A stretch of DNA of 58,330 nt from Octopus bimaculoides (Eukaryota): positions 63,345,821 to 63,404,150 of the forward strand of contig NC_068992.1 of the NCBI RefSeq assembly GCF_001194135.2, read 5' to 3'. Below, in pieces: positions 3,186-58,090 of the stretch. Under the pieces are notes generated by a model that ran no database searches, had not been told where the DNA came from, and was given only the letters and a program-made list of their open reading frames with translations. Made by a program: the position numbers and the translations under genes. Within the stretch, counting starts at the first letter, position 1. Each line of letters opens with the position of its first letter.

Positions 3186-4372
3186 AATATTAATAATATT
3201 ATAATTAATATTATTATCATTATTATTTAGGAGCAAGCAGGAAGAAACATTAGGATGCCAGGCAAAATGCTTAGAGACATTTCATCCATCTTTATGTTCT
3301 AAGTTCACATGCTGTCAACATTGATTTTGCCTTTCATCCTTTTGGGGTTCAATAAAATAAGTACCAGTCATGCACTGGAGTTGATGTAATTGTCTTACCC
3401 CTCCCCAAAACTGCTGGCCTTGTACCAAAATTTGAAATCATTATTATTATTATTAGGTGGTGAGCTGGTAGAATCGTTAGCACACTGGATAAAATATTTA
3501 GCAGTATTTCATCTGCCGCTACGTTCTGAGTTCAAATTCCACCAAGGTCGACTTTGCCTTTCATCCTTTCAGGGTCAATTAAATAAGTACCAGTTACGCA
3601 TTGGGGTAATGTAATCGGCTTAATCCCCTCCCCCAAGCTGCCCATGTGGAAAAAATTTGCGATCATTATTATTATTAAACAGTGCATACATGACGTGTTT
3701 CTTCCATTTTAGCCCTTATAAAGACCTCAATCAGACTCAATAAATAGGTTCTCTACTTGACAACTAACAGTATTTTCTCACACACACATCCCCCCACCAT
3801 TCCCCACACACAGCCTTAACCACATCTGTAGACACAAAAATCAAGATGACACTAAAAATAATCAGACGGCATCACAAGNNNNNNNNNNNNNNNNNNNNNN
3901 NNNNNNNNNNNNNNNNNNNNGTTACTATCAGACATACCTCTCACCTCTATTACTCACCCAGGATCAAAGAAATACTTCCTTCATTATCATCATCAGCATC
4001 TTTATTATATTACTAGGAGTACCCGGCGTTGTTCAGGTATTAAATACTCGGCAATGGTCTTAATAGGTTCTACCATTTTTTTCGTTGTATATCTCTTTGA
4101 ATATTTTTTGCATTATGTAGCAAACATTGACATTGAGGAAGAAGTGATTTTCCCATAGACCATAAATAAAGTAGTAACAACAGGGTGAAAAGCCCTGGAG
4201 AAGCTACAAGAGCATCTCAGGGGGTGCAACAATTGAATGTAAAGTGGCCCTGAAAAGGGCCGTGTTATTCTCACAATAGCCCTGAAAAGGATTGTTAACT
4301 GTTCACAAGTATAAACGTCCTTTTTTTGTTCATATGAAAAGCAATGGGTGCAGTGATGCCAAAACTCAAGCC

Positions 4373-6671: not shown

Positions 6672-7073
6672 ATGGTTCCGGGTTCAGTCCCACTGCGTGG
6701 CACCTTGATCAAGTGTCTTCTACTATAGCCTCGGGCCGACCAAAGCCTTGTGAGTGGATTTGGTAGACGGAAACTGAAAGAAGCCCGTCGTATACATGTG
6801 TGTGTGCGTGTGTGTGTGTGTGNNNNNNNNNNNNNNNNNNNNNNNNNNNNNNNNNNNNNNNNNNNNNNNNNNNNNNNNNNNNNNNNNNNNNNNNNNNNNN
6901 NNNNNNNNNNNNNNNNNNNNNNNNNNNNNNNNNNNNNNNNNNNNNNNNNNNNNNNNNNNNNNNNNNNNNNNNNNNNNNNNNNNNNNNNNNNNNNNNNNNN
7001 NNNNNNNNNNNNGCTCGACTAAAGGCGGAGCTCCAGCATGGCCGCAGTCAAATGACTGAAACAAGTAAAAGAG
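6672..7073 (+). repeat. SINE-like family B (tRNA-like head, internal microsatellite)
   Basis: GGTTCCGGGTTCAGTCCCACTGCGTGGCACCTTG..GGAAACTGAAAGAAGCCCGTCG..GCAGTCAAATGACTGAAACAAG. Other copies at about 9411, 29510(-), 34610(-), 38208, 40500 and 56115. Confidence 0.85.
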
Positions 7074-10140: not shown

Positions 10141-13100
10141 CCATGCCGGTGACACACAAAAGGTACCCACTACACTCTTGGAGTGGTTGGCATTAGAAAG
10201 GGCATCCAGTGGTAGAAAACAGGCCAAGATTAGATTGAAACCCAATTCGGATCTCCGGCTTAACAGTTCCATTTAACCAATGCCAGCAAGGACACTAAAT
10301 GATGATGCTGTCTGTAGTACTAGGGGTATGACCTGGAGAGATCCCTTATGTGACAAACAGGTGAAGGTTGGTGACAGGAAGGCAATACAACAGTAAAACA
10401 ATGCCTCAGTAAAATATTTGTCTAACCCATGCTGGCATGGAAAAATAAAAGTAGAAAAGAATGGATGTAAAAGTAAATGAACGAATTTGAAGGTAAAAGA
10501 AATGTTTTTTTGAAGTAATCACAGAACAAATAGATCATAATCCAAGATAAATTATGTACGTGGTGGTACAACATGCTAGAAATAGCAGTTCAGCTATTCT
10601 CAAATTACATCTTGCAAGGTTGCAAAAAAAAAAAAAAAAAAAAAAGACAGAAAAGAAAAATGTTGTTCAGTTGGAAATAGAGAAAACTGAGAAAAATATA
10701 AGATGCCGTCACACACACACACACACACACACGTGTGTGTGTGTGTGTAACTTATATTTATCTGATAAAGGATTTGCTCCGAGATCGTGTGTTGAAACTA
10801 AAGTAATTACAGAATAGAAGACACACACTCGCCATTCAAAAACACACAGAGCAGTTAACTTCATTTAATCATTTATTATTTGGAGTCAAAATTTTACTCG
10901 CNNNNNNNNNNNNNNNNNNNNNNNNNNNNNNNNNNNNNNNNNNNNNNNNNNNNNNNNNNNNNNNNNNNNNNNNNNNNNNNNNNNNNNNNNNNNNNNNNNN
11001 NNNNNNNNNNNNNNNNNNNNNNNNNNNNNNNNNNNNNNNNNNNNNNNNNNNNNNNNNNNNNNNNNNNNNNNNNNNNNNNNNNNNNNNNNNNNNNNNNNNN
11101 NNNNNNNNNNNNNNNNNNNNNNNNNNNNNNNNNNNNNNNNNNNNNNNNNNNNNNNNNNNNNNNNNNNNNNNNNNNNNNNNNNNNNNNNNNNNNNNNNNNN
11201 NNNNNNNNNNNNNNNNNNNNNNNNNNNNNNNNNNNNNNNNNNNNNNNNNNNNNNNNNNNNNNNNNNNNNNNNNNNNNNNNNNNNNNNNNNNNNNNNNNNN
11301 NNNNNNNNNNNNNNNNNNNNNNNNNNNNNNNNNNNNNNNNNNNNNNNNNNNNNNNNNNNNNNNNNNNNNNNNNNNNNNNNNNNNNNNNNNNNNNNNNNNN
11401 NNNNNNNNNNNNNNNNNNNNNNNNNNNNNNNNNNNNNNNNNNNNNNNNNNNNNNNNNNNNNNNNNNNNNNNNNNNNNNNNNNNNNNNNNNNNNNNNNNNN
11501 NNNNNNNNNNNNNNNNNNNNNNNNNNNNNNNNNNNNNNNNNNNNNNNNNNNNNNNNNNNNNNNNNNNNNNNNNNNNNNNNNNNNNNNNNNTATTAGTCAC
11601 CTGGAGCGATAGCTAAATAGTTGAATGATCTCCCTTGCAAGAAAGATCATAGAGTAACCTCCCTTCTCTAAGTTTCTTGAAGCATCTGTGCCATGAGACG
11701 CGATTCTTAATTATTTTTTTTTTTTGCCCACAGGGGGGCTAAACATAGAGGGAACAAACAAGGACAGACAAAGGGATTAAATCAATTACATCAACCCCAG
11801 TGCGTGCCCCCCCCCGCCCCAAAAGGATGAAAGGCAAAGTCAACCTCGGCGGAATTTGAACTCAGAACGTAACGGCAGACAAAATACCGCTAAGCGTTTC
11901 GCTCAGTGCACTAACGTTTCTGCCAGCTCACCGTGGTTCTTAATTATTCAAGAAGATTAGCGTTTCTTGTGGAAGTTTCATTCCATTCATAAAAACAGTT
12001 TGCTAACCCAGCACTTCGCTTCTTAGTCGATTAGACTTAGAGCCATTCATGTCATTGCTATGCCCGTCTATTTCTCTATGCCACATGACAGAAAACAACC
12101 ACTAAGCTGTTATTTCTACATTTTCTATCTCTGAACTTTCTTGCCTAGATTATTTCATTCAACTAGATTCTACATTTTGATTCTATGTATCATCAACCAG
12201 TGAATAAAATATATTTTTATGTAGTAAATACATAGACCTTTATTTATTCTTTCATCTCTTTTATGAACTCTTGTAATAACATACACGCAGCCACATCAAC
12301 ACCTTGTACTGACTATATATTCCCACTATAACTTTATCAAATGTAATCCTTATTTATTCACATTATTTTGAATTAATCATGTATTATCTCGATTAGAAAT
12401 TTTGATGATGTGACTTTTTTTATTGTTAGAATGACATTGTAAGGTAAGTGTAAGATGTCAGATCTGGTTGATTTGAACATAAAACAGGTAGGACATTTGT
12501 ACCAGATATAGCTAATTTAAATGCTAAATGGTTAAAGCTATTACAAGAGTGACCAACCCATATTTTTCTCAGTTGTCTATTTCCAGCTGAACAGGTTTTG
12601 TCTTTGCAACATGGTAAGTTGTAATTTGAGAAAGATTTAACTACTATCTCTGTTAAATGTAACACTTACTTATTAACACTATTCTCAATTAATCGTGCGT
12701 GCTCTCACAGCTTTACGATTTCAATGAAGTGATTGTTTAGTTTTTAGAATGACATTGCAAGGTAGGTGTGAGAGGCCAGAACTGGCCTGTCTTAAAAAGC
12801 CGATAGAATATTTGAGCCAGATATGTCTAATTTAAATGCTTATTGGTTAGGTGGTGCCCCAGCATGGTCACAGCCTTTGGGGTGGAACCTGGCATGGGTT
12901 AGACAGAAGCTGGCAAGACAGAGGCTTACACCGAGCTCCAATTGTCTGGGGTTTTTTTGGGTTTTTTTGCCCACAAGGGGGCTAGATATAGAGGGGACAA
13001 ACAAGGATAGACAAACGGATTAAGTCGATTATATCGACCCCAGTGTGTAACTGGTACTTATCTAATCGACCCCGAAAGGATGAAAGGCAAAATTGACCTC

Positions 13101-29009: not shown

Positions 29010-29291
29010 GAGGAATCCCCTTCAGTAAACAAGGCTGAGGAAACCCTTAGTCCCGAGCCTAAGCGCAAACCCCTTTTTGATGCTGACAGTGATGACAGTG
29101 AACTCCCAGATGACGAGATTCCTGGTATCAGCAGTGGTGATGAGGAAGAAGAAGAAGAAGAAGAAAAAGGTGGAGATACGGAAGATGATGATGATGATGA
29201 TGGGGAAGACGATGGTGATGCAGAAGAGGCTGATGGTACCAGTGATGAAGACGATGATGATACTGGTGATGATGATGATGATGATGATGAT
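29010..29291 (+). CDS. NOP2: NOP2 exon 4 (acidic D/E-rich region)
   Basis: Acceptor taatacag and donor gtaagt; phase 0 to 0. KRKPLFD followed by poly-E and poly-D. Confidence 0.9.
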
Positions 29292-33738: not shown

Positions 33739-33824
33739 TGAACTTGGTGAAGAGGAATTGATGTCCAGCATCAAAAAAACTGAAAAGTTTGTTCTGCCCT
33801 CTGGTCAAGAAATAGAAGCTGAAG
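33739..33824 (+). CDS. NOP2: NOP2 exon 6 (ELGEEELMSSIKKTEKFVLPSGQEIEAE)
   Basis: Conserved FVLP motif; acceptor cttttcag; ends at the U12 donor ATATCCTTT; phase 2 to 1. Confidence 0.92.
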
Positions 33825-36800
33825 ATATCCTTTTTTTGTCTATGTTCATATTTTCATTTCTCATATACTGATTTTATTAGTATACTTCATTTCAAAAGCA
33901 TGACAGATTAATTGTTTGTTTTCTCTGACCACCCATAGTCATTATACACTTCTGATGCGTCTAAAGTACCATTAACAGTTCTACATTATCTTGAATCAAT
34001 GTGTTGATGTTCATGTTTGGCAAAACCACTAGTGCTCTCAGTTCTGTGACCTGTAGTAACTATAGATAAAGGTAAACATTTAGCATTTTAACCAGCTACA
34101 TGCGGCCAAAATATTCTAGTTGTTTTTATGTTCAAATTGGCCAAGTCCAGCTTTGTACACCTACACTACAAATCATCCAAATCTCAAAGCTATGAGGTAA
34201 TGCATGATTAATTCAAAACTATGTGAATAAATAAGCTTTACATTTGACAGAAGAATTTGAATGCTAAAGATAACTGTAAGCTAAATAAACAAGGGATCTC
34301 TTAAAATTTTGGTATTGCTGCTAACAAGTGCAGCATAACGAATTCATGAAAACACAGTACATTATACCACCATTGGTCATGCATTGGATTAGACTAGTAG
34401 TCAGAGGAATTACAAGTTCCTGTTCATAATTTATTTTGATTTAAGGAAGTGCCAAGCTATCAGTTGCTGGAAAACCAGTGGTGCACCTGTATTTGTGTTA
34501 ATACTTTTGATGCCAACCTGCCAGAAATTGTCTCTAGTTCTGCGATGCAAAAACTTGCTCTTTTAAAGGAATTTTAATGAAAATTTTCCATTGAATTTGA
34601 TGTCTTTTATCTTTTACTTGTGTCAGTCATTGGACTGCAGCCATGCTGGGTCACTGCCTTGAAGAATTTTAGTCGAATAAATTGACTCTAGAACATACTT
34701 TTCAAGCCTGGTACTTATTCCATCATTCTATTTTGCTGAACCGCTAAGTTATGGGAACATAAACACACCAATACAAGTAGCCACAAGCAGTAGTGGTGGA
34801 CAAACACAAAGACACACATATGTACGACAGGCTTCTTTCAGTTTCCAGAACGATGTAGTTGGTAAGCAAGCTTTTTACCACACGGCCAACGCGCCTTGTT
34901 ATTTTTTCTCCCGCACCTAAGCTTAATAATGTCACAGTTTATTAAATTCCTTATTTTCAAAATTAAAACAGATGCATTGTATTCCACCAGAAATAATGTT
35001 TCTGAGAGTAAGGCTGTGCTGAGTAGCCTTCCTTGTTTTCTTATTACTTCCCTTTTTAATGTAATTGCGAGAAACGTCTATCGCCCACTCCGACTTCACT
35101 TACCTCTCCATTTGGTAGCCATGAGTGAAGGCGCGTAGCTTGGTGGTTAGGGTATTAGGCTGACGATCGTAAGATTCTGAGTTCAATTCCCGGCGGCAAG
35201 TTGTATCCTTGAGCAAGACAGTTTATTTCTGTATTTGAAAGGATCAGCCTTGTCACATTCTGTGTCACGCTAAATCTCCCTGAGAACTACATTAAGGGTA
35301 CGTGCGTCTGTGGAGTACTCATCCACTTGCACATTAATTTCACGAGCTGGCTGTTCTGTTGACCGCATCCACTGGAACTCTCTTGTTGTCATAACCGATG
35401 GAATGCCAGTTTTAGTAGTCGTGCCCACTCTCAGCCATTTTGTACCATCGTCAATTGACAGAATAATATGAATGCTAAAGAGTTAAAGCAGGAATTTGTA
35501 TCATGGAACTAAGGATCAGTCTTAAGTGGGCCCTTAAAAAGGGTTAATTGATCTCTGTCCAAAATTTTTTTTTTCAGTTTTTAATATTTTAATAGAAGTG
35601 CCTAATGCTGAAAGGGTTAACACTAATTGACCTATTAATATATAGGGTTCCTTACACCTGTTTTACCCCTTACTACCATGACAGTGTCTGAACATAAACA
35701 GTGGATATCTTCCTCTTTATCTGAAAGCAGCTCTGCACCCATCTGTCATGTCATTCTTATTGCAGTTCGTCTTAGTTTCTCTGCTCCTTTCCCTGCACTG
35801 CAGCGGCTGCTCTAGCCCTTTCTCTGATAGAGGAGGGTAGGTAAATGATGACCAATGCCAATTCAGTCATTTCTCTCTGACAGACTTGGGTTAATGGTTG
35901 AGCATAAATTCAACATTTTAAACCATGTTGTTAATTAGTCTCAAGTCAACTCTGATTAATAAGCAAGCTTTTGAGCCAAACGATTTCAGTTATGACCATC
36001 CAGTCTACTTTTTGCCCACAAGTACAGTGTACCTTGGAGTACATAGTTCATTATATTCATTAATAGAGTGTAGATTGAGGGAGATTTGACTGCTATTTCT
36101 AGCAGACCCATGACGACCGTTGTTCCTCTCTCATTGGTTTGTTTTGTATTTTCTCATTTTTATGTAGCCCCAAGTCAGCACTGATCGAGCTGACTTTGGA
36201 TCAAAGGTTTCCTAGCTGTGACCAACCAGTGGATTATCATCATTGTTTAACATCTGCTTTCCATACTGGCATGGGTTGGATGGTTTGACATGGAGCTGGC
36301 TAGCAGGGCAGTGTCTGGACTCCGACTGTCTGTTGTTGTATGGTTTCTATGGTTGGATGCCCTTCCCCAACACCATCCGCTTAACAGTGCGCTGGGCACA
36401 TTGTATATGCCACCGGCATGAGTGCATTTATGTAGCAGTGGCACGGGTGCTTTTTAAGTGGCACTAACACCTGAAGGGACAAGTCTGTATGTATGGCAGA
36501 CAGCGATTTTACTTAGCTTGACATGTCTTACCAAGTATAGCAAATCGCCACATCTTCTGATCTCTTGCCTTTTCTTCAATGAAGCCCAGCATCCACAGAT
36601 TCTTTCTTACCATTTAATCCCGCGTCTTTCTGAATCTAAGCAATATTCTTGAAGCCTATTATATTTGATAAGATGCTTCAGATATTGATAATGTGTATAT
36701 AAGTGATTACATTGGCCAATGTAGACTTTATTTAAACCAGCCATATCTGACCAAAATATTCTACCTGTTTGATGTTCAAACTAACCGTGTCTGGCCCCTC

Positions 36801-37090
36801 ACACCAATCCTACAATATTGTTCTAGAAATTAACAGTTATCTCACCAAAATCTCAAATCCATAAGTTAATGCATGATTAATTTAAAACAGTGTGAATAAA
36901 TAAGTGTTGCATTTAACAAAATAATTTGAATGCTAAAGAGTTAAGATGTGTGGTGTTTGAGGGACATTTGGCTACTATTTCTCTGAGGCCTAGCATAGAA
37001 GTTTCCTTGTTGACTCATCTTCTGTTTTGTGTTCTGTGACTGTGTAGACATCAGTTCTAAATTTTGGTTACTTTCCATAACTTTGCACAC
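33825..37090 (+). other. U12-type (minor spliceosome) AT-AC intron, NOP2 intron 6, 3266 nt
   Basis: 5' site ATATCCTTT at 33825, branch-site-like TTCCATAAC at 37073-37081 and terminal AC at 37089-37090. This junction restores the frame (GAA G|AA AAA TTA GTG CCA GAC CTG); the alternative AC at 37087-37088 gives a stop. Confidence 0.95.
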
Positions 37091-37184
37091 AAAAATTAGT
37101 GCCAGACCTGGTACTTATTCAGCACAGAATACGAGAAGTTATTCATGTTTTGGCAAATTTCAAAGAGAGACGACAGGAAGATAC
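37091..37184 (+). CDS. NOP2: NOP2 exon 7 (KLVPDLVLIQHRIREVIHVLANFKERRQED)
   Basis: Resembles human PDLQRVHKRIQDIVGILRDF; preceded by an AC acceptor; donor gtaagt; phase 1 to 2. Confidence 0.93.
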
Positions 37185-38877: not shown

Positions 38878-38959
38878 GTCAGCATTAATCTTTGTACCAC
38901 ATTTAATCTGAATTTTTTATAAAACAGGCATTTTTGCAAACTGGGAATCAGTGCTTTGG

Positions 38960-39235
38960 AAAGAGAATAATTTCCCGCTATGGCAATGTCAACTGGCCTT
39001 CATGTTCTGCAGACTTGACTAGCCTGGAATTTTTCTTGTGGGGATACCTGAAAGAGAGGGTTTACATCAACAAACCGGAGACCCTAGTGTAACTGAAGGA
39101 GTACTTCAATAGAGAAATCAGAGAAGTGGGGTTTGAAACTCTTGAGGGTGTTATGGTGCAAGTTTTGGAAAGAGCACAGGTGTGCGAAGCCGAAAATGGT
39201 TTCCATTTAAGCGATGTCGTTTTTTTATATGTGAT
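38960..39235 (+). mobile_element. Tc1/mariner transposase C-terminal remnant
   Basis: RIISRYGNVNWPSCSADLTSLEFFLWGYLKERVYINKPETLV*LKE..R..C..ENG.HL resembles the WPPRSPDL..DFFLWGYLK motif; contains an internal stop. Confidence 0.88.
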
Positions 39236-40187
39236 GTAGAGGTGTTGCAAAATTTGACTTGTGCATATTAATTTCCATTATGTCCTTTATATTGTATCAA
39301 TCCTGACCATCATCATAAAAGTCTTTACATCTACTTTGCCATGTTTCCATGGGTCAGACATGACCATGTTGATGGGTGGAGGTTCTGCTGCCAATTTCCT
39401 ACCCTGATTTTAATTCTTGTTCCTAAGTATTGTAATAATGCCTTAGTCTGTCGGACAACAAAGGGCCTGGACAGAATAATGCAGAGAACTGGAAACAAAT
39501 GAAGGAGTCTTTTGTTTACAGTCAGCAAATGCACGCAGGTATGGATAAAGTTACCATCTCGAGTCTCCCCACCTGGATAGGACGCCAGTCCATCACAAGT
39601 TTACTCCTTTTTGCCAGCTGAGTGAACTGGAGCAACATGAAATGAAGATCTTGCTCAAGAGTGCAATGCATCGTCTGGTCCAAGAATTGAAACCACAATC
39701 TTACGACCGAGAGTCCAACACCGTAACCGCTCAGCCACATGCCTCCACAAACACACATGAAGATAAGGGGCAATAAGCACACTTTCACACAAATACATTT
39801 AGGTGTGGCTTTGTGGTTAAGAAGCTGGCTCCTTGTGGTTTCGAGTTCAGTCTCACTGCATGACATTTTGGGCAAAAGACTTCTTGTCTAATTATCCCAT
39901 TCAGCTAAATTGTTTAACCCCAGGTCAACCTTGATCATGCAGACTTACAATCAAAGGTAATCCAACCATGTCTACTTGGTTGTTTTATAAGTAAGTCTAA
40001 GACTTCCTTATCCATTGGTGTGCTTCCCTTATTAAAGAAATTTGGTTGCCATTTTGTATTGTGCTCAGTATTCAAAATTTAGACTTTCAAAAGGCAATTT
40101 CTTCTTTACAGTAGAATAAAGAAGGAATCCTTTTTTTTTTTTTTTTTTTGAAACTTACTGATTCTTTGTTGTTTTTACCTCTTTTAG

Positions 40188-41179: not shown

Positions 41180-41614
41180 GTATGGTATTATGTATTTTTA
41201 TTATTTCTATATGATGATATTTCATCATCATCATCGCCACCATCATTGTTTTCATGTCTACTTTTCCATGCTTGCATGAGTCAGAATTTCTAGAGGTACA
41301 TTTCTGAATGGATGGATGCCCTTCCTCTCACCAACCCTTACTCATTTCATCATCACCATCGTCATTTAACATTCGCTTTTCCAAGGGTGTATGTATCAGA
41401 TGGAGTTTGTTTCACAGATTTTCTACGGTTGGATGCTCTTCCTGTCACCAACCCTCACCTGTTTCCCAGTAAGGTAATATTTTGCCCCTGGCCTGATGTG
41501 TTTTTCCATGGAGCACTGGAAAGGACCAGTATTGCATGTATGATAGTGATGCTCATTTATAAACAGCACATGATGTCAAGAGCAAAGTATACGCATGCAC
41601 ATGCATGCACACAG

Positions 41615-42185
41615 CATCGACAAAACCAGCGTCAAGATCAGATTTAGGACTGATGACAAACTCTTCAACATGTGGAGACTACAGAGCAAGACCAAGGTGA
41701 AAAAGGACTCAATATGTGACTTCCTGTTTGCAGACGACTGCATGCTCAATGCTACCACAGAGGCTCAGATGCAACGGAGCATGAACTGTTTTACCTCTAT
41801 CTGCAATAACTTAGGCCTCACAATCAATACACAGAAGGCAAAGGTTATGTACCAACCTGCCCCACCTCACAAAAGCTGCACGTGTAACCAATTATCACTG
41901 CCGATGGGGAAACCCTGAAGGTTGTTAATAAGTTCACATACCTCGGCATTGCATTCTCCAGTTCTGTGAACATTGATGACAGAGTCAACACACATACACA
42001 TTGCGAAGGGAAGCTCAGCGTTTGGGCAGCTGCATGAATCAGTATGGGGGAGGAGAGGTATTAGGCTGGCCACCAAGTTGAAGGTGTACCAAGCAATTGT
42101 ACTGGCTACACTACCGTGTGCTTGTGAGAGCCGCACAGTTTACGAACACCACCACACCAAATGGCTTAACCGCTCCCACATTTGA
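41615..42185 (+). mobile_element. RTE (BovB-like) LINE reverse transcriptase remnant
   Basis: IRFRTDDKLFN..RLQSKTKV..DFLFADDC..GLTIN..KAKVMYQP..KFTYLG..AKGSSAFGQL..VW.RRGIRLATKLKVYQAIVL; frameshifted. Confidence 0.92.
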
Positions 42186-46415: not shown

Positions 46416-47421
46416 GTATGTCAATGTATTTATTTTATCATCATCATCATCATCCTCCTCGTCTTAACTTCCACTTTTCCATCCTTTCATTGGTTGGAGA
46501 ATTTGTTGAGAGGGATTTTGTTTGGCCAGATGCCCTTCCTCATACCCCCACCACCTATCTACTACATACGCGCATTCCTTTCTACCCACTAGACCTTTTA
46601 ACCTCATCTCCTCCCCTTCCCTCCTCTATATATGCTCACCCCCCTCTATCCTGTAAGATCAACTGACCATTAAAATATACCGCTACCATCCTTCACCTCT
46701 ATCTCTCCTCCATCCCCTTTCACATTCTGTCTTCATGGCTTGACCTAATTACCGCTCATCCTTCACTTGACTTGGCCATTCTTCAAATAAACAAGCTAAA
46801 ATCCATCGCAGTATGGCATATATTCACCTCTGCTATCTATGCTATATCAGCCTTCGTTCCAACATCTATTTCCGGATTATCCCCATATGGATTACTTTAC
46901 ACGGATTTCTACACGGATATTTACTACTGGAATGAAACTACACTTCAAGTACTGNNNNNNNNNNNNNNNNNNNNNNNNNNNNNNNNNNNNNNNNNNNNNN
47001 NNNNNNNNNNNNNNNNNNNNNNNNNNNNNNNNNNNNNNNNTATATATATATAGATAGATAGATAGATAGATAGATGTGAATGTCAAGGCACATGGCTTAG
47101 TGGTTAGAGTGTTTGGCTCATGATCATAAAGTAGTGAGTTCAGTTCCTGGTAGTGCTTTATGTCCTTGAGCAAGACACTTTGTTTCATATTGCTCCCATC
47201 CACTCAGCTGGTGAAAATGAATAGTACCTGTATTCTAAAAGGGCCAGCCATGTCACATTCTGTGTCATGCTGAATCTCCCTGAGGACTCTGCTAAGTGCA
47301 TGCATGTCTGTGGAGTGCTCAGCCACTTGCATGTTAATTTCACAAGCTGGCTGTTGATCCCTTGTTTGGGTCAACTGAACCCCTTGTTGTTGTAACCAAT
47401 AGAGTGTCAGTTATCTAAGCT

Positions 47422-47508
<87 letters not shown>

Positions 47509-48476
47509 TGTGTGTGTATGTGTATATGTATATATATATATACACATATATATATATAAACATGCACACACATAGATACACACAGGTGTATGTACTTTTG
47601 TCATTTAAGTTGCATGTAATCATCTTTTGGTGCTAAAGGGAATCTACAGTGATTTTGGTCATTGCCTCCCCTCCACCGTACTTCTGCCATTGTTCACCAT
47701 CACCACCACCACTGCCACCACCACCATCGCCACTGTCAAAACTATCGCACACCTCCATCCTCTGCTCACACCACCACCACCACCACCATCACACCATGTA
47801 ACACTATCCCCCTCACCCAACCCCCAAACCTGCAAATGTCCTTCTCTTGTTCTTAATTATTCAACAATAGTCAAGATTCCATCAGCATCGATGTGGAAAC
47901 TACCATGGAATTGAAGAAAAGAGACCACAAGATTGCAATTGTCCGTTTTAGCATTCTCCAAGACACAAGACACAAGCTGACAATGCTCTTTATTTACAGC
48001 ATGCTTGGTCAGTTCCTTTGGGCAGTGAGCGAGTGGTCAGTTTAGAACCAGCTGGGAGATGGCTGCAAGTAACGACTACATGACAAAACGTGATGGAGAC
48101 ACTGACAAACTGAAGTAATTAGTTAGTTTTCAAAGTGACCTTCGTTTCTCCTTCTGACAATTCGTTTCACTTAGGGCTTAACTCCTTCCTTTCCTACCAA
48201 GATGTCTACCTATAAGATTTACCTTACCTATCTACTGACCTACCTGCTTAAATATATACAGACATAGCTACAGGCCAGCCTATCTATCTACCTACATATC
48301 TATCTCTCTCTCTCTATCTTTCTGTGTATATATATATATATATACATACATATAATGTCCCACCCATGCTAGCATGGAAAGCAGGCGTTAAACAATGATG
48401 ATGGTATATATATATATATATATAATAGAGCACTTAATATAAGCTCAATAAAATATTCCTTTTGAATATTCTTTAT

Positions 48477-52138: not shown

Positions 52139-52141
<3 letters not shown>

Positions 52142-52231
<90 letters not shown>

Positions 52232-52250
52232 TATGTACATATATATATGT
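52142..52250. repeat. (TA)n microsatellite downstream of the NOP2 stop
   Basis: Long TA run. Many similar TA, CA, GA and trinucleotide tracts occur across the window. Confidence 0.97.
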
Positions 52251-54938
52251 ATATTCCCATAATTACAGAGTAAACAAAGAAAATTACATGGAAAATTGTT
52301 TATGGAATTTATTCTTTTATGAGTTTTTCAATTTTAGTGCTGGCCATGGGTCTTGATTGGTTTTCCAAAACCCCCTCTCCCTAGGTATAGCTGTGTGGTT
52401 AAGAAGCTTGGTTTCCTGCCATGTAGTTTTGGGTTCAACCCCAATGTCAAACCAAGGGCAAAGTGTCTGGTGTGTAGAAACTGAAAGAAGGGCATCTCAC
52501 GTACACATGTATGTGTGTGTGTATTCTTGTATGTTTGTATTTTCTTGCAATTGTTGTCATTCATTTTGAATATTCGACAAAATCATGGTTGTCCATGGTA
52601 GGCAATATTAACATACTTGGAAACAGGTAAGATTTGGTGGTAGGTGGGTTAGTTGTCTCAACTCAATCTGATGCAAGCAAGCATGGAATAGTGAACATTA
52701 CAACAATGGTGATAATTATCATCATCATCATTTAACGTCTGTTGCCCATGCTGGCATGGGTTGGATGGTTTGACTAGGGCTGGAAGGCTGCACCAGACTC
52801 CAGTCTGATTTGGCATGGTTTTCTACAACTGGATGCCCTTCCTAAAGCCAACCACTCTGAGAGTGTAATGGGTGCTTTTATGTGCCACCGGCACAGGTGC
52901 CATTTGCGCAACACCATGACTGTGATTTTGCTTGGTTTGGTGAGTCATCTTCTCAAGCACAACATAATGCCAATGGTTTTGATCTACGAAAAACTGTTTT
53001 TGCAAACTTTGGTGTAAATATTTTTAACATCAAACGTGTCAACTTGGTAAACGCATGCAACAATGTATTCTTCAATATGCTGAAAAAACCAGCCTAACAC
53101 TATAAAATAATGGCCATGTTTGAACAATCTAGTTCCTGATATACAAACATTGATTTTATCTTGAGTGGCCCTCATCCACAGTAGTTTCTCTCTCACAAGT
53201 GATCTGCCAACTTAACTGCAACAACAAAGTTTTCTCTTGCCAACCATGGAAGGCTTCTGTTGGTCACACGACTTATTAGCTATAGCAGTTGAGTTTGTGG
53301 CTGTGTGGTAAGAAGCTTGGTTCTGAGTTCAATGCCACTGCGTGACGTCTTGGGTTATTGTCTCAGGTTGACCAAAACCTTGTGAGTGGATTTGGTCCAT
53401 GGAAACTGAAAGAAGCCTGCCATGTATATATATATATATATCTGGAACAGTGGATTGAGAAGCAAGGAAGGCTATAAATAATAGCCTGTAAATACAGGAT
53501 TAAAAACCTTTGGATAGAAAAAGTTGAAGGCTGTCTGTGGGACACGAACCCACAGTTTATTTATTTATCCGTTTTCTCTTTTCTATTTGACTTCTATATC
53601 TCTCACTCTCATCTATCTTGTTTCTCTTTTTCATTTCTTTCTCTGCCAATTGCTTTCCTGTTTTCCTATCAAAATGCCATCTGCCTGTCTTTGGAAATTA
53701 GTTCTCTAACTTAATGTAATGCGTTTCCTTGATGATCCTTTTTGGTTAAGCATCCAAATGCACTTGGAACATCAAATGCAGGATTACAAGCTACCTGAAA
53801 CGTACGTAGGAACTAATAACATAAACTTGTGTTTATCTTAATCTCTCCTACATTTGTTGTGTATTTCATAACTAATCATACTACATAATATCGTTGCTAT
53901 TATGTTAAACTGTCGTATGTCCAAATTTGGCCAAATGCGTTTTTTTCAATATTTATTTTTGCTTGCAATAGCCAGTTCTCTTGGTCAAACTATCGTAAAC
54001 CCCAGCTGCTTCAGATGTCAAAGCGTAATACAACGGTTTTGCTATGGATTGGTGGAACTACTTTTTCGTTTTCTGAAAAAAAAAGAAAAAAAAGCAACGT
54101 TTTGGACTTAGGACACTTTTGCATAATAGCAATAATATATACTGGAACATGAAAGTCTACGTGGAACTCCAAAGATAACAGAAGTAGTACATCTGTTTGT
54201 ACACACAGGATATGATGTGTGTGTGTTTCATAATAAGCTTGTGTTGCGCTACAGACCCTGCATCAGCTGTCATATAAAAATCTCAACGATTTCAGCATCT
54301 TTCAACAGAACCGTTCCTTCGAGTGCTACGGTTAGTGTGGTGTACTGTTGTCTTCCTTGTGTATAAGAACGCTAGGAGAAAGGTATTCTTTCTCTCTCTC
54401 ACAGTCTTTCTGTCTCACTCTCTCATGTCTGTCTGTCTGTCTCTCTCTCTATATGTATATGCGTGTGTGTCTATATATAGCTTGTATTGTGAAACACTCT
54501 CATCAAAAGGTTACAATGGCTTCGAAATCTTCCGACAGAACCGCTCCTCCTACCGGCACCAAGAAGCATTGATGCTACCAAAAAAAAAAAAAAAAAAAAT
54601 AGTCTGAGTTATATGGGTCTACACTAATGCAATTTCTCCCTTGTCATCGATGCAGCCCTAGCAGTAATCTTGAGTACAGCTGCAACCATCCCGACCATGT
54701 AGGGATTATTTTGTCCACTAAGGAATTGTTCTTTGCTCTGAGCTTTTTGCCTTCTCAGACCAACACATGCCACATCCACGCTGAAGCATTTTCCATTTCC
54801 TTCTCTAACATGCATGGTTCGAACTTTTGCTTCCTTAGACTTTATATTCTAAAATAAACTAAAGCCAAAATTGCCAACAATTTCTTTGCAATACTTCATA
54901 AAGGATGACCTGACATCTAATGCATCATTGATATAGAC

Positions 54939-56114: not shown

Positions 56115-57663
56115 GGTATAAGAAGTTTGCTTCCCAACCTATTGGTTCCGGGTTCAGTGAGCCACCTTGGGCAAGTGTCTTCTATAGCCACGAGCCGACC
56201 AAAGCCTTATGAGTGGATTCGGTAGACGGAAACTGAAAGAGGCCCGTCGTATATATGTGTGTGTTTGAGTCTATGCTTATCTCCCACCACCGCTTGGCAA
56301 CCGGTGTTGTTGGTTCACCTCCCCGTAAGTTTGAAGTTCGGCAAAAGAGACCGATAGAATAAGTACCAGGCTTAAAAAAGAACTGGTGTCCATTCGTTCG
56401 GCTAAACTTCTTCAAGGAGGCGTCCTCAGCATGACTGCAACCAGTAATATATACATACATACATGAAAACTCCGAATGACCCGTCCTTGTTTTCATTGTA
56501 TCGTCTATCTGGATGTTTTGTTGTCCCTACAGCGGCGTACGTACACTTTGGTCTCTTATATTTCTGTCTATCAGCCCTTTCACGCTTATTCATTCATTCC
56601 ACTCTTCGTTCTTTCGTTCCCCCTCTCTCACATTTCCCTGTCTTCTCTTCCTGCTCACTTTCCCTCCACTTTTCACTTCACTGTGACCTTGTCATTTTTT
56701 CTCTCCCCTCCTTAATCTTCTGTCCCTCTACCTCTACCTCTCTCTCTTCTCTCCCCACGTGACCAGTGTTCAGTCAAGACTGATCTTTCTTGGTTCAGCC
56801 GTCGTCCGTGCAACATCTATATTCCTCCCTGTGCCTGTGAAATCTTGTATCCCTGCCCTAAGGCTTTATTTCCACACGCACTAGCTTAATTTAATTCGTC
56901 CTTAGTCGAAAGACACATGTTGTTATGTCCTGNNNNNNNNNNAATGACCCGTCCTTGTTTTCATTGTATCGTCTATCTGGATGTTTTGTTGTCCCTACAG
57001 CGGCGTACGTACACTTTGGTCTCTTATATTTCTGTCTATCAGCCCTTTCACGCTTATTCATTCATTCCACTCTTCGTTCTTTCGTTCCCCCTCTCTCACA
57101 TTTCCCTGTCTTCTCTTCCTGCTCACTTTCCCTCCACTTTTCACTTCACTGTGACCTTGTCATTTTTNNNNNNNNNNNNNNNNNNNNNNNNNNNNNNNNN
57201 NNNNNNNNNNNNNNNNNNNNNNNNNNNNNNNNNNNNNNNNNNNNNNNNNNNNNNNNNNNNNNNNNNNNNNNNNNNNNNNNNNNNNNNNNNNNNNNNNNNN
57301 NNNNNNNNNNNNNNNNNNNNNNNNNNNNNNNNNNNNNNNNNNNNNNNNNNNNNNNNNNNNNNNNNNNNNNNNNNNNNNNNNNNNNNNNNNNNNNNNNNNN
57401 NNNNNNNNNNNNNNNNNNNNNNNNNNNNNNNNNNNNNNNNNNNNNNNNNNNNNNNNNNNNNNNNNNNNNNNNNNNNNNNNNNNNNNNNNNNNNNNNNNNN
57501 NNNNNNNNNNNNNNNNNNNNNNNNNNNNNNNNNNNNNNNNNNNNNNNNNNNNNNNNNNNNNNNNNNNNNNNNNNNNNNNNNNNNNNNNNNNNNNNNNNNN
57601 NNNNNNNNNNNNNNNNNNNNNNNNNNNNNNNNNNNNNNNNNNNNNNNNNNNNNNNNNNNNNNN

Positions 57664-57695
<32 letters not shown>

Positions 57696-58090
57696 GGATA
57701 TGTGTGTGTATTTGTGTATGTATATGTATTGTAATAGAGTGGGATCTCGACAAATGTCATTGTTGGATTTTTTGGGGGTTTTTGGGGGTTTTTTTGCTTT
57801 TTTAATCCGATATAGATAATTTCGTGTCATCTATCCAGCTCGATTGGGTGCTCGGAATTGACATTATAGCAGTTCGAATTTCAGTTAACTTTTCGTACAA
57901 TTTGTTCCAGTCACCATGAAGAATGTTGTAGGCATTTTTCGTGATATCGTGCTGTGCCTTCTCGCTCTTCACCTGATCTTGAAGTTCATCTATCTACAAA
58001 AAGAAAACCACGAAACGTTTACAAATGTTATCGATCATTTTTACTGTACTTTCCGCCATACAAGTCAACATATTATTTAGTATAAACATA

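Follow-up and report, generated by a model that had tools for sequence, protein, structure and literature searches.

A U12-type AT-AC intron in NOP2 of Octopus bimaculoides, a probable orthologue of human P120 intron F

The minor intron of human NOP2 (NSUN1/P120/NOL1) is intron 6, or intron F, and lies between exons 6 and 7 (PMC3201867; PMC8283771). Its branch site falls at positions 84/85 of the intron (PMC3201867), which fits a length of about 100 nucleotides (nt). Gain of U12-type introns is very rare in animals, molluscs are relatively rich in minor introns, and Octopus sinensis stands in tables of pairwise intron conservation with human (PMC10639083). A further survey reports that in molluscs, too, most orthologues of human minor introns belong to the minor class (PMC11347168). 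Here we describe the intron at this site in a 58,330-nt stretch of the Octopus bimaculoides genome (contig NC_068992.1, positions 63,345,821 to 63,404,150; hereafter the window), which holds the NOP2 gene. By direct reading, intron 6 of this gene occupies positions 33825-37090 of the forward strand, a length of 3266 nt, lies in phase 1 and has AT-AC termini. A preliminary description of the window had called it a minor-spliceosome intron apparently orthologous to the human one, and what it stated of human NOP2, namely that the gene carries the classic minor intron at a length of about 100 nt, agrees with the papers cited above. We consider it highly probable that octopus intron 6 depends on U12, is excised by the minor spliceosome as an AT-AC intron and is orthologous to P120 intron F.

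The splice signals lie exactly at the edges of the flanking coding exons. Exon 6 ends at 33824 in ...GAAGCTGAAG (...CAAGAAATAGAAGCTGAAG), and the sequence continues from 33825 with ATATCCTTTTTTTG. The 5' splice site, G/ATATCCTTT, abuts the exon end, starts on the first base past the last codon supported by homology and matches the U12-type consensus /[AG]TATCCTT at 9 of 9 positions. The branch motif TTCCATAAC (37073-37081) is separated from the 3' end of the intron by 9 nt and differs by one mismatch from the consensus TTCCTTAAC, which makes it a TCCTTAAC-like motif within the range of about 8-20 nt upstream. The intron ends at 37090 in ...TTTGCACAC; its terminal dinucleotides are AT (33825-33826) and AC (37089-37090), the latter as part of a CAC of the YAC type (Y, pyrimidine). 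Exon 7 begins at 37091 with AAAAATTAGTGCCAGACCTG, and the boundary reads ...GGTTACTTTCCATAACTTTGCACAC/AAAAATTAGTGCCAGACCTGG. Joining 33824 to 37091 completes a Glu codon split as G/AA and yields ...LPSGQEIEAE-E-KLVPDLVLIQHRIREV..., that is, ELGEEELMSSIKKTEKFVLPSGQEIEAE-E-KLVPDLVLIQHRIREVIHVLANFKERRQED across exons 6 and 7. The U12-type AT-AC intron of the preliminary description is thereby borne out by a full 5' consensus, a near-consensus branch motif, a YAC end and a joined product identical to a public protein (see below).

Taken alone, each signal 9-mer occurs twice in the window, both strands counted, against about one occurrence expected, and shuffled sequences gave similar numbers. The signal therefore consists in the placement of the motifs. 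Their exact coincidence with both homology-defined exon edges is the non-random feature, and from the hit rates we estimate its joint chance at ~1e-9. Among the 16 introns of the gene, intron 6 is the only one that combines non-GT-AG termini with a 5' site and a branch motif of the U12 type; the 15 others are GT-AG introns with GTAAG-like donors, and a U12-like branch motif is present in 0/15.

A motif scan and a homologue search identified the host gene as NOP2, with orthologues found across Metazoa. The best homologue, O. sinensis XP_029643554.1, is 97% identical to a first, crudely stitched query of 387 amino acids and contains the exact peptide produced by the AT-AC join. Pfam finds Methyltr_RsmB-F, RsmF-B_ferredox and Methyltr_RsmF_N in the product of our gene model, as expected for the architecture of an RsmB/F methyltransferase, and the best solved structure is that of human NOP2 (8fkt_SY, E=1e-166, residues 1-605 aligned). 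With the AT-AC join, this product of 686 amino acids is letter for letter the O. bimaculoides protein RefSeq XP_014790014.1 (UniProt A0A0L8FGK5), and public annotation therefore already uses the AT-AC junction. Sepia pharaonis NOP2 and eleven Logan proteins form one cluster at 90% identity, the latter from contigs of 2.1-2.6 kb among the matches listed, which we read as the size of messenger RNAs (mRNAs). Within this cluster the junction was read in the Sepia protein and in one Logan protein, and both carry EIEAESKLPPDL, the homologous joined peptide. A word-index search with the 59-residue junction peptide gave no match although the peptide is present in the O. sinensis protein; this reflects a limit of the index and does not speak against the join.

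Introns at the site were located in a sample of other species by an exact protein-to-genome junction finder (Table 1). This protein-anchored comparison, which the preliminary description had proposed, puts the intron at the same codon and in phase 1 in shrew, gecko, spider, mussel and O. sinensis, and phase 1 holds for all sampled species that have the intron. The codon position is the same in all, whether counted from PDL or, with a one-residue indel, from QEIE: three codons stand between the split codon and PDL in octopus (E, KLV), shrew (D, AQA), gecko (A, AQP) and spider, and counting from QEIE puts the split codon third in octopus, gecko, spider, mussel and Nematostella. Shrew, gecko and spider share the 5' motif of the octopus at this site, where the mussel has GTATCCTT. 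The shrew intron combines ATATCCTTCC with the branch motif TTCCTTAAC, the end CCAC and a D codon split as G/AT, and the spider intron has the branch motif TCTTAAC and the end TAA. O. sinensis agrees with the window at every base of both signals and of the 47 nt before the 3' site, and the aligned interior of the intron is 88-90% identical.

Human NOP2 protein reads EMEQDAQAPDL and is shrew-like at the junction. The human junction would be expected to read ...GAGCAGG/ATATCCTT...CCAC/ATGCCCAGGC..., with the codon split G/AT in phase 1. The human position comes from the shrew gene as a mammalian proxy, from the human protein and from the literature, not from human genomic DNA, and it is through this proxy that the position stated in the preliminary description, four codons ahead of PDL and in phase 1, is borne out. 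Together, these comparisons support orthology of octopus intron 6 with human NOP2/P120 intron F in position, phase and class.

Because an intron is also present at this site in a cnidarian, the position is older than the bilaterian ancestor. U12-type introns at the same site and phase in spider and mussel, together with the Nematostella intron, thus support a pre-bilaterian age, and the sampled genes support the view that inheritance of the U12 intron goes back at least to the last common ancestor of Bilateria. The same-site U12-type introns in vertebrates, spider and mussel also agree with the earlier claim that the intron predates the protostome-deuterostome split and was kept in a mollusc. 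In Priapulus caudatus there is no intron at the site, residues 15-93 including QEIEKESVQPADL being encoded in one exon (L007 2108-2344); this species has lost the intron, though the literature calls it rich in minor introns (n=330). The sampled NOP2 gene of the deep-sea snail Gigantopelta aegis has 0 introns and consists of one uninterrupted open reading frame (ORF) of 667 codons (L004 501-2504); it may have arisen as a retrocopy, either in place of the parental gene or alongside a parental gene outside the sample. These two genes, both of which lack the intron, could be taken to favour independent gains at the same proto-splice site in octopus and vertebrates, in which case the two introns would not be orthologues, as could the fact that intron sequence outside the signals is unalignable between phyla, with lengths from 303 to 3266 nt. 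We regard such parallel gain as very improbable, given that the sampled mammal, reptile, spider, mussel and cephalopods agree in position, phase 1 and U12 class and that the cnidarian intron shares site and phase. Retention from the bilaterian ancestor with few losses requires far fewer events than parallel gain of a class of intron whose gain is very rare (PMC10639083).

There is still less room for a real junction of the GT-AG type, used by the major spliceosome with donor CTG/GTCAAG at 33804 and acceptor TTAG/TG at 37099, and with merely coincidental AT-AC signals. Enumeration does find several frame-preserving GT/GC-AG pairs, and the earlier statements that exon 6 has no usable GT and that only the AT-AC join keeps the frame were too strong. 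The pair 33804/37099, for example, gives ...FVLPS-VPDL... and removes GQEIEAEEKL. All enumerated pairs have weak sites, in this example the donor GTCAAG and an acceptor in an A-rich context, and all delete or replace the GQEIE... residues that are conserved from cnidarians (Nematostella) to mammals. Such a product is absent from the cephalopod proteins examined, except for O. vulgaris CAI9731367.1 (P0238; A1 columns 240-255), for which an annotation pipeline chose a GT-AG pair. This protein reads EAEDILFFLLYLVLIQ at the junction, with EAE-DILFFLLY-LVLIQ instead of EAE-EKLVPD-LVLIQ, so that six conserved residues (EKLVPD) are replaced by eight spurious ones (DILFFLLY). The same peptide is reproduced exactly from O. 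sinensis DNA by a GT-AG pair (L001 13343/15405), TTCTAT/GTTCAT, 21 nt into the intron, and TTCCAG/ACCTGG, 15 nt into exon 7. Judged from these sequences, the annotated junction is wrong in the NOP2 model of O. vulgaris, as a forced GT-AG artefact. The mis-modelling foreseen for gene predictors restricted to GT-AG has thus occurred in O. vulgaris, but not in the RefSeq annotation of O. bimaculoides. By contrast, the AT-AC product is present in the RefSeq models of two Octopus species, in the Sepia protein and in one Logan protein of its cluster, and full U12 signals are conserved at the site in four phyla.

It is likewise extremely unlikely that intron 6 is an AT-AC intron of the rare U2-dependent kind, removed by the major spliceosome, for even though AT-AC termini alone do not fix the class and the pyrimidine content of the 3' end resembles that of the U2-type introns of the gene, the 5' site equals ATATCCTTT at 9/9 positions and is not ATAAGT-like as in U2-type AT-AC introns, a TCCATAAC branch motif lies close to the 3' end, at the short spacing that characterizes U12-type introns, and it is the orthologous human intron that serves as biochemical prototype for splicing by the U12-dependent route (PMC3201867).

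Some observations weigh against assigning intron 6 to the minor spliceosome. Upstream of the 3' site, pyrimidines make up a fraction of 0.70, with a longest run of 6, and the U2-type introns of NOP2 span a range that includes these values. The branch motif departs from the consensus by an A for T at the fifth position. The branch-site-binding stretch of vertebrate U12 small nuclear RNA (snRNA), GUAAGGAA, has one mispair with UUCCAUAAC, and the departure would amount to a mispair if octopus U12 has the vertebrate sequence. This one-base departure, kept in both Octopus species, appears small, if unexplained. Rfam gave 0 matches at the gathering threshold over the window, hence no minor snRNA gene there, and the presence of the machinery therefore rests on the literature. 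For use of the junction 33824/37091 in mRNA, the annotation and the conserved encoded peptide would be the grounds.

For a U12-dependent intron 6, the established biochemistry of the human orthologue suggests the following course, to which the present comparison contributes the signals and their conservation. The U11/U12 di-small nuclear ribonucleoprotein would bind the 5' site ATATCCTTT (U11) and the branch motif TTCCATAAC (U12) together, and U6atac would later take the place of U11 at the 5' site. A strong polypyrimidine tract would not be required; the 3' site would be set by the short distance (~10 nt) between branch and 3' end and by the terminal AC. Splicing would join G (33824) to AA (37091) and so restore the Glu codon in ...LPSGQEIEAE-E-KLVPDL.... 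The large size of the octopus intron would be due to interspersed repeats typical of the genome, with ~1.8 kb of blocks that differ between the two Octopus species.

Table 1. Features of the NOP2 locus in the window, and introns at the site of intron 6 in other species (a slash marks an exon-intron boundary; L numbers denote the sampled genomic loci)
Feature	Location	Strand	Remarks
NOP2 (NSUN1/P120) coding region	22302-52010	+	17 coding exons, 16 introns, 686 amino acids; model built against O. sinensis protein P0001
Coding exon 6	33739-33824	+	86 nt; ..ELGEEELMSSIKKTEKFVLPSGQEIEAE + G; direct reading, gene model
Intron 6, U12-type AT-AC	33825-37090	+	3266 nt, phase 1; direct reading, gene model
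U12-type 5' splice site	33825-33833	+	ATATCCTTT; identical in O. sinensis
U12-type branch-site motif	37073-37081	+	TTCCATAAC; identical in O. sinensis
3' splice site	37088-37090	+	CAC; direct reading
Coding exon 7	37091-37184	+	94 nt; AA + KLVPDLVLIQHRIREVIHVLANFKERRQED..; direct reading, gene model
Interspersed repeat	34162-34270		same family as 36730-36951; 8 other copies in window; inside block 33855-34440
Interspersed repeat	34588-34888		about 250-300 nt; about 8 other copies in window, 68-86% identity
Interspersed repeat	35125-35411		with weak tRNA-like segment 35134-35195
Interspersed repeat	36233-36465		about 10 other copies in window; inside block 35234-36468
Interspersed repeat	36730-36951		about 220 nt; 7 other copies in window
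Same-site intron, O. sinensis	L001 13322-15390		2069 nt; signals and split codon context identical to window
Same-site intron, Suncus etruscus (shrew)	L009 6095-6397		303 nt; AT-AC; G/ATATCCTTCC...TTCCTTAACTGGCCCAC/AT; ENEQ-D-AQA-PDL
Same-site intron, Gekko japonicus	L002 13627-15794		2168 nt; AT-AC; G/ATATCCTTCC...CTCCTTAAC(12 nt, ending CCAC)/; QEIEKE-A-AQP-PDL
Same-site intron, Parasteatoda tepidariorum (spider)	L005 9019-9502		484 nt; AT-AA; A/ATATCCTTTT...TCTTAACAATTATAA/; QELEKE-S-VTP-PDL
Same-site intron, Potamilus streckersoni (mussel)	L006 37612-38637		1026 nt; U12-type GT-AG; A/GTATCCTTGC...TCCTTGAC(12 nt, ending CCAG)/; QEIEKD-T-QT-PDL
Same-site intron, Nematostella vectensis	L008 6276-6498		223 nt; phase 1; U2-type: GTGAGA, polypyrimidine tract, TAG

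At least 36% of intron 6 matches sequence elsewhere in the window, at 68-89% identity, in at least five families and on both strands. The preliminary description had attributed the length of the intron to insertions of short interspersed nuclear elements (SINEs) and miniature inverted-repeat transposable elements (MITEs). Repeats are indeed present, and a SINE is weakly indicated by a segment resembling transfer RNA (tRNA), the sole hint of this kind, which at 20.6 bits falls short of the gathering score of 29; ARAGORN found no tRNA. The MITE label is without support because a search of intron 6 for inverted repeats found none. Rfam detected no intronic small nucleolar RNA in intron 6 at E<=1. 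Two blocks, 33855-34440 and 35234-36468, are unaligned to the O. sinensis locus and both hold repeat copies; recent insertion or deletion therefore accounts for some of the difference in length between the introns of the two octopuses. At this site, intron lengths range from 223 to 3266 nt in the sample, 2.2 kb in the gecko among them. The human length of ~100 nt need not be ancestral, and the earlier proposal of a ~30-fold expansion, which assumes that it is, goes too far. In the Suncus intron, a T-run precedes ~200 nt of GC-rich sequence, unclassified, which resembles a SINE insertion.

Intron 11 of octopus NOP2 holds a reverse-transcriptase fragment (RVT_1, Pfam, E=4.4e-7; 41574-41915, forward strand) of a decayed retroelement, and the ORF beside it (41970-42182) gave no Pfam match. 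Two short ORFs in intron 9 (38907-39236, forward strand; ...DLTSLEFFLWGYLKERVY...) may resemble the C terminus of a mariner/Tc1-type transposase, a likeness that is unconfirmed; Pfam found nothing in them, nor in most of the long intronic ORFs. The scaffold is gapped and repeat-rich, with runs of N (assembly gaps) at 3870-3920, 6800-7020, 10900-11600, 56930-56945 and 57160-57760 and long TA/CA-type microsatellites, for example, at 1-430, 47400-47570 and 52140-52260; these gap and microsatellite coordinates are approximate, being taken from runs of X in ORF translations.

Elsewhere in the gene, the donor of intron 4 stands at the end of a GAT (Asp) repeat (window 29268-29291), and RefSeq isoform X2 (682 amino acids) differs from X1 only by four Asp residues at this repeat, which suggests alternative donors inside it. 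A permissive splice enumeration also returned "AT-AC" solutions for intron 4; we rejected these as artefacts of the GAT repeat, the real sites being GAT/GTAAGT...CCAG. Among the sampled loci, a Nematostella NOP2 exon (residues 339-371) occurs in two places at 100% identity and out of order (L003 2187-2285 and 6568-6666), which may be a local duplication or a misassembly. In O. sinensis (L001), two consecutive exons (residues 400-447 and 446-476) occur twice, ~1.64 kb apart and with equal identity to the protein (21938-22081/23579-23722 and 22862-22954/24505-24597); they are single copies in the O. bimaculoides window, and the doubling reflects a tandem duplication or else an artefact of assembly.

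In conclusion, octopus NOP2 intron 6 is a real and ordinary feature, and the account given here is a correct reading of something already known and annotated, as follows from the correct RefSeq model and from the published surveys (PMC10639083; PMC11347168). It illustrates the stability of minor-spliceosome introns, in that the human P120 prototype is found at the same codon in octopus, spider and mussel. The practical consequence concerns annotation, as in the forced GT-AG model of O. vulgaris NOP2; no new question is opened. We think it unlikely that the intron has more to offer, as a compact natural series of the fates of one ancient minor intron combined with a role for the octopus branch site. 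The states at the site in our sample are AT-AC (vertebrates, cephalopods), AT-AA (spider), U12-type GT-AG (mussel), U2-type (Nematostella), precise loss (Priapulus) and an intronless copy (Gigantopelta). On such a reading, the non-consensus TTCCATAAC in a repeat-laden intron of 2-3 kb might make minor splicing rate-limiting for NOP2, and hence for ribosome biogenesis; alternatively, TTCCATAAC might reflect a compensating change in cephalopod U12 snRNA.

Among the known systems, the Nematostella intron agrees with that of the octopus in codon position and phase 1, and differs in being of the major-spliceosome type, with a long polypyrimidine tract and a length of 223 nt; either the class was converted in one lineage or the ancestral state is undecidable from this sample. 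The Potamilus and Parasteatoda introns share position, phase and a U12-type 5' site (G/ATATCCTT), with TCCTTGAC or TCTTAAC as their branch motifs, and unlike the AT-AC intron of the octopus they have GT-AG termini in the mussel and AT-AA in the spider. Switching of terminal dinucleotides between subtypes is known for U12 introns. O. sinensis intron 6 (XP_029643554.1) has identical 5', branch and 3' signals, phase and junction peptide, but is 2069 nt long and has blocks of its own. Human NOP2/P120 intron F, which is the prototype of U12-dependent AT-AC introns, lies in the same host gene between coding exons 6 and 7. As far as shrew and gecko DNA, the human protein and the papers tell, it shares phase 1, three codons and then PDL, AT-AC termini, the 5' site ATATCCTT and a branch site 8-12 nt from the 3' end. 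The octopus intron differs from it in length (3266 nt against ~100 nt in human and 303 nt in shrew), in its branch motif (TTCCATAAC instead of TTCCTTAAC) and in a repeat content of at least 36%.

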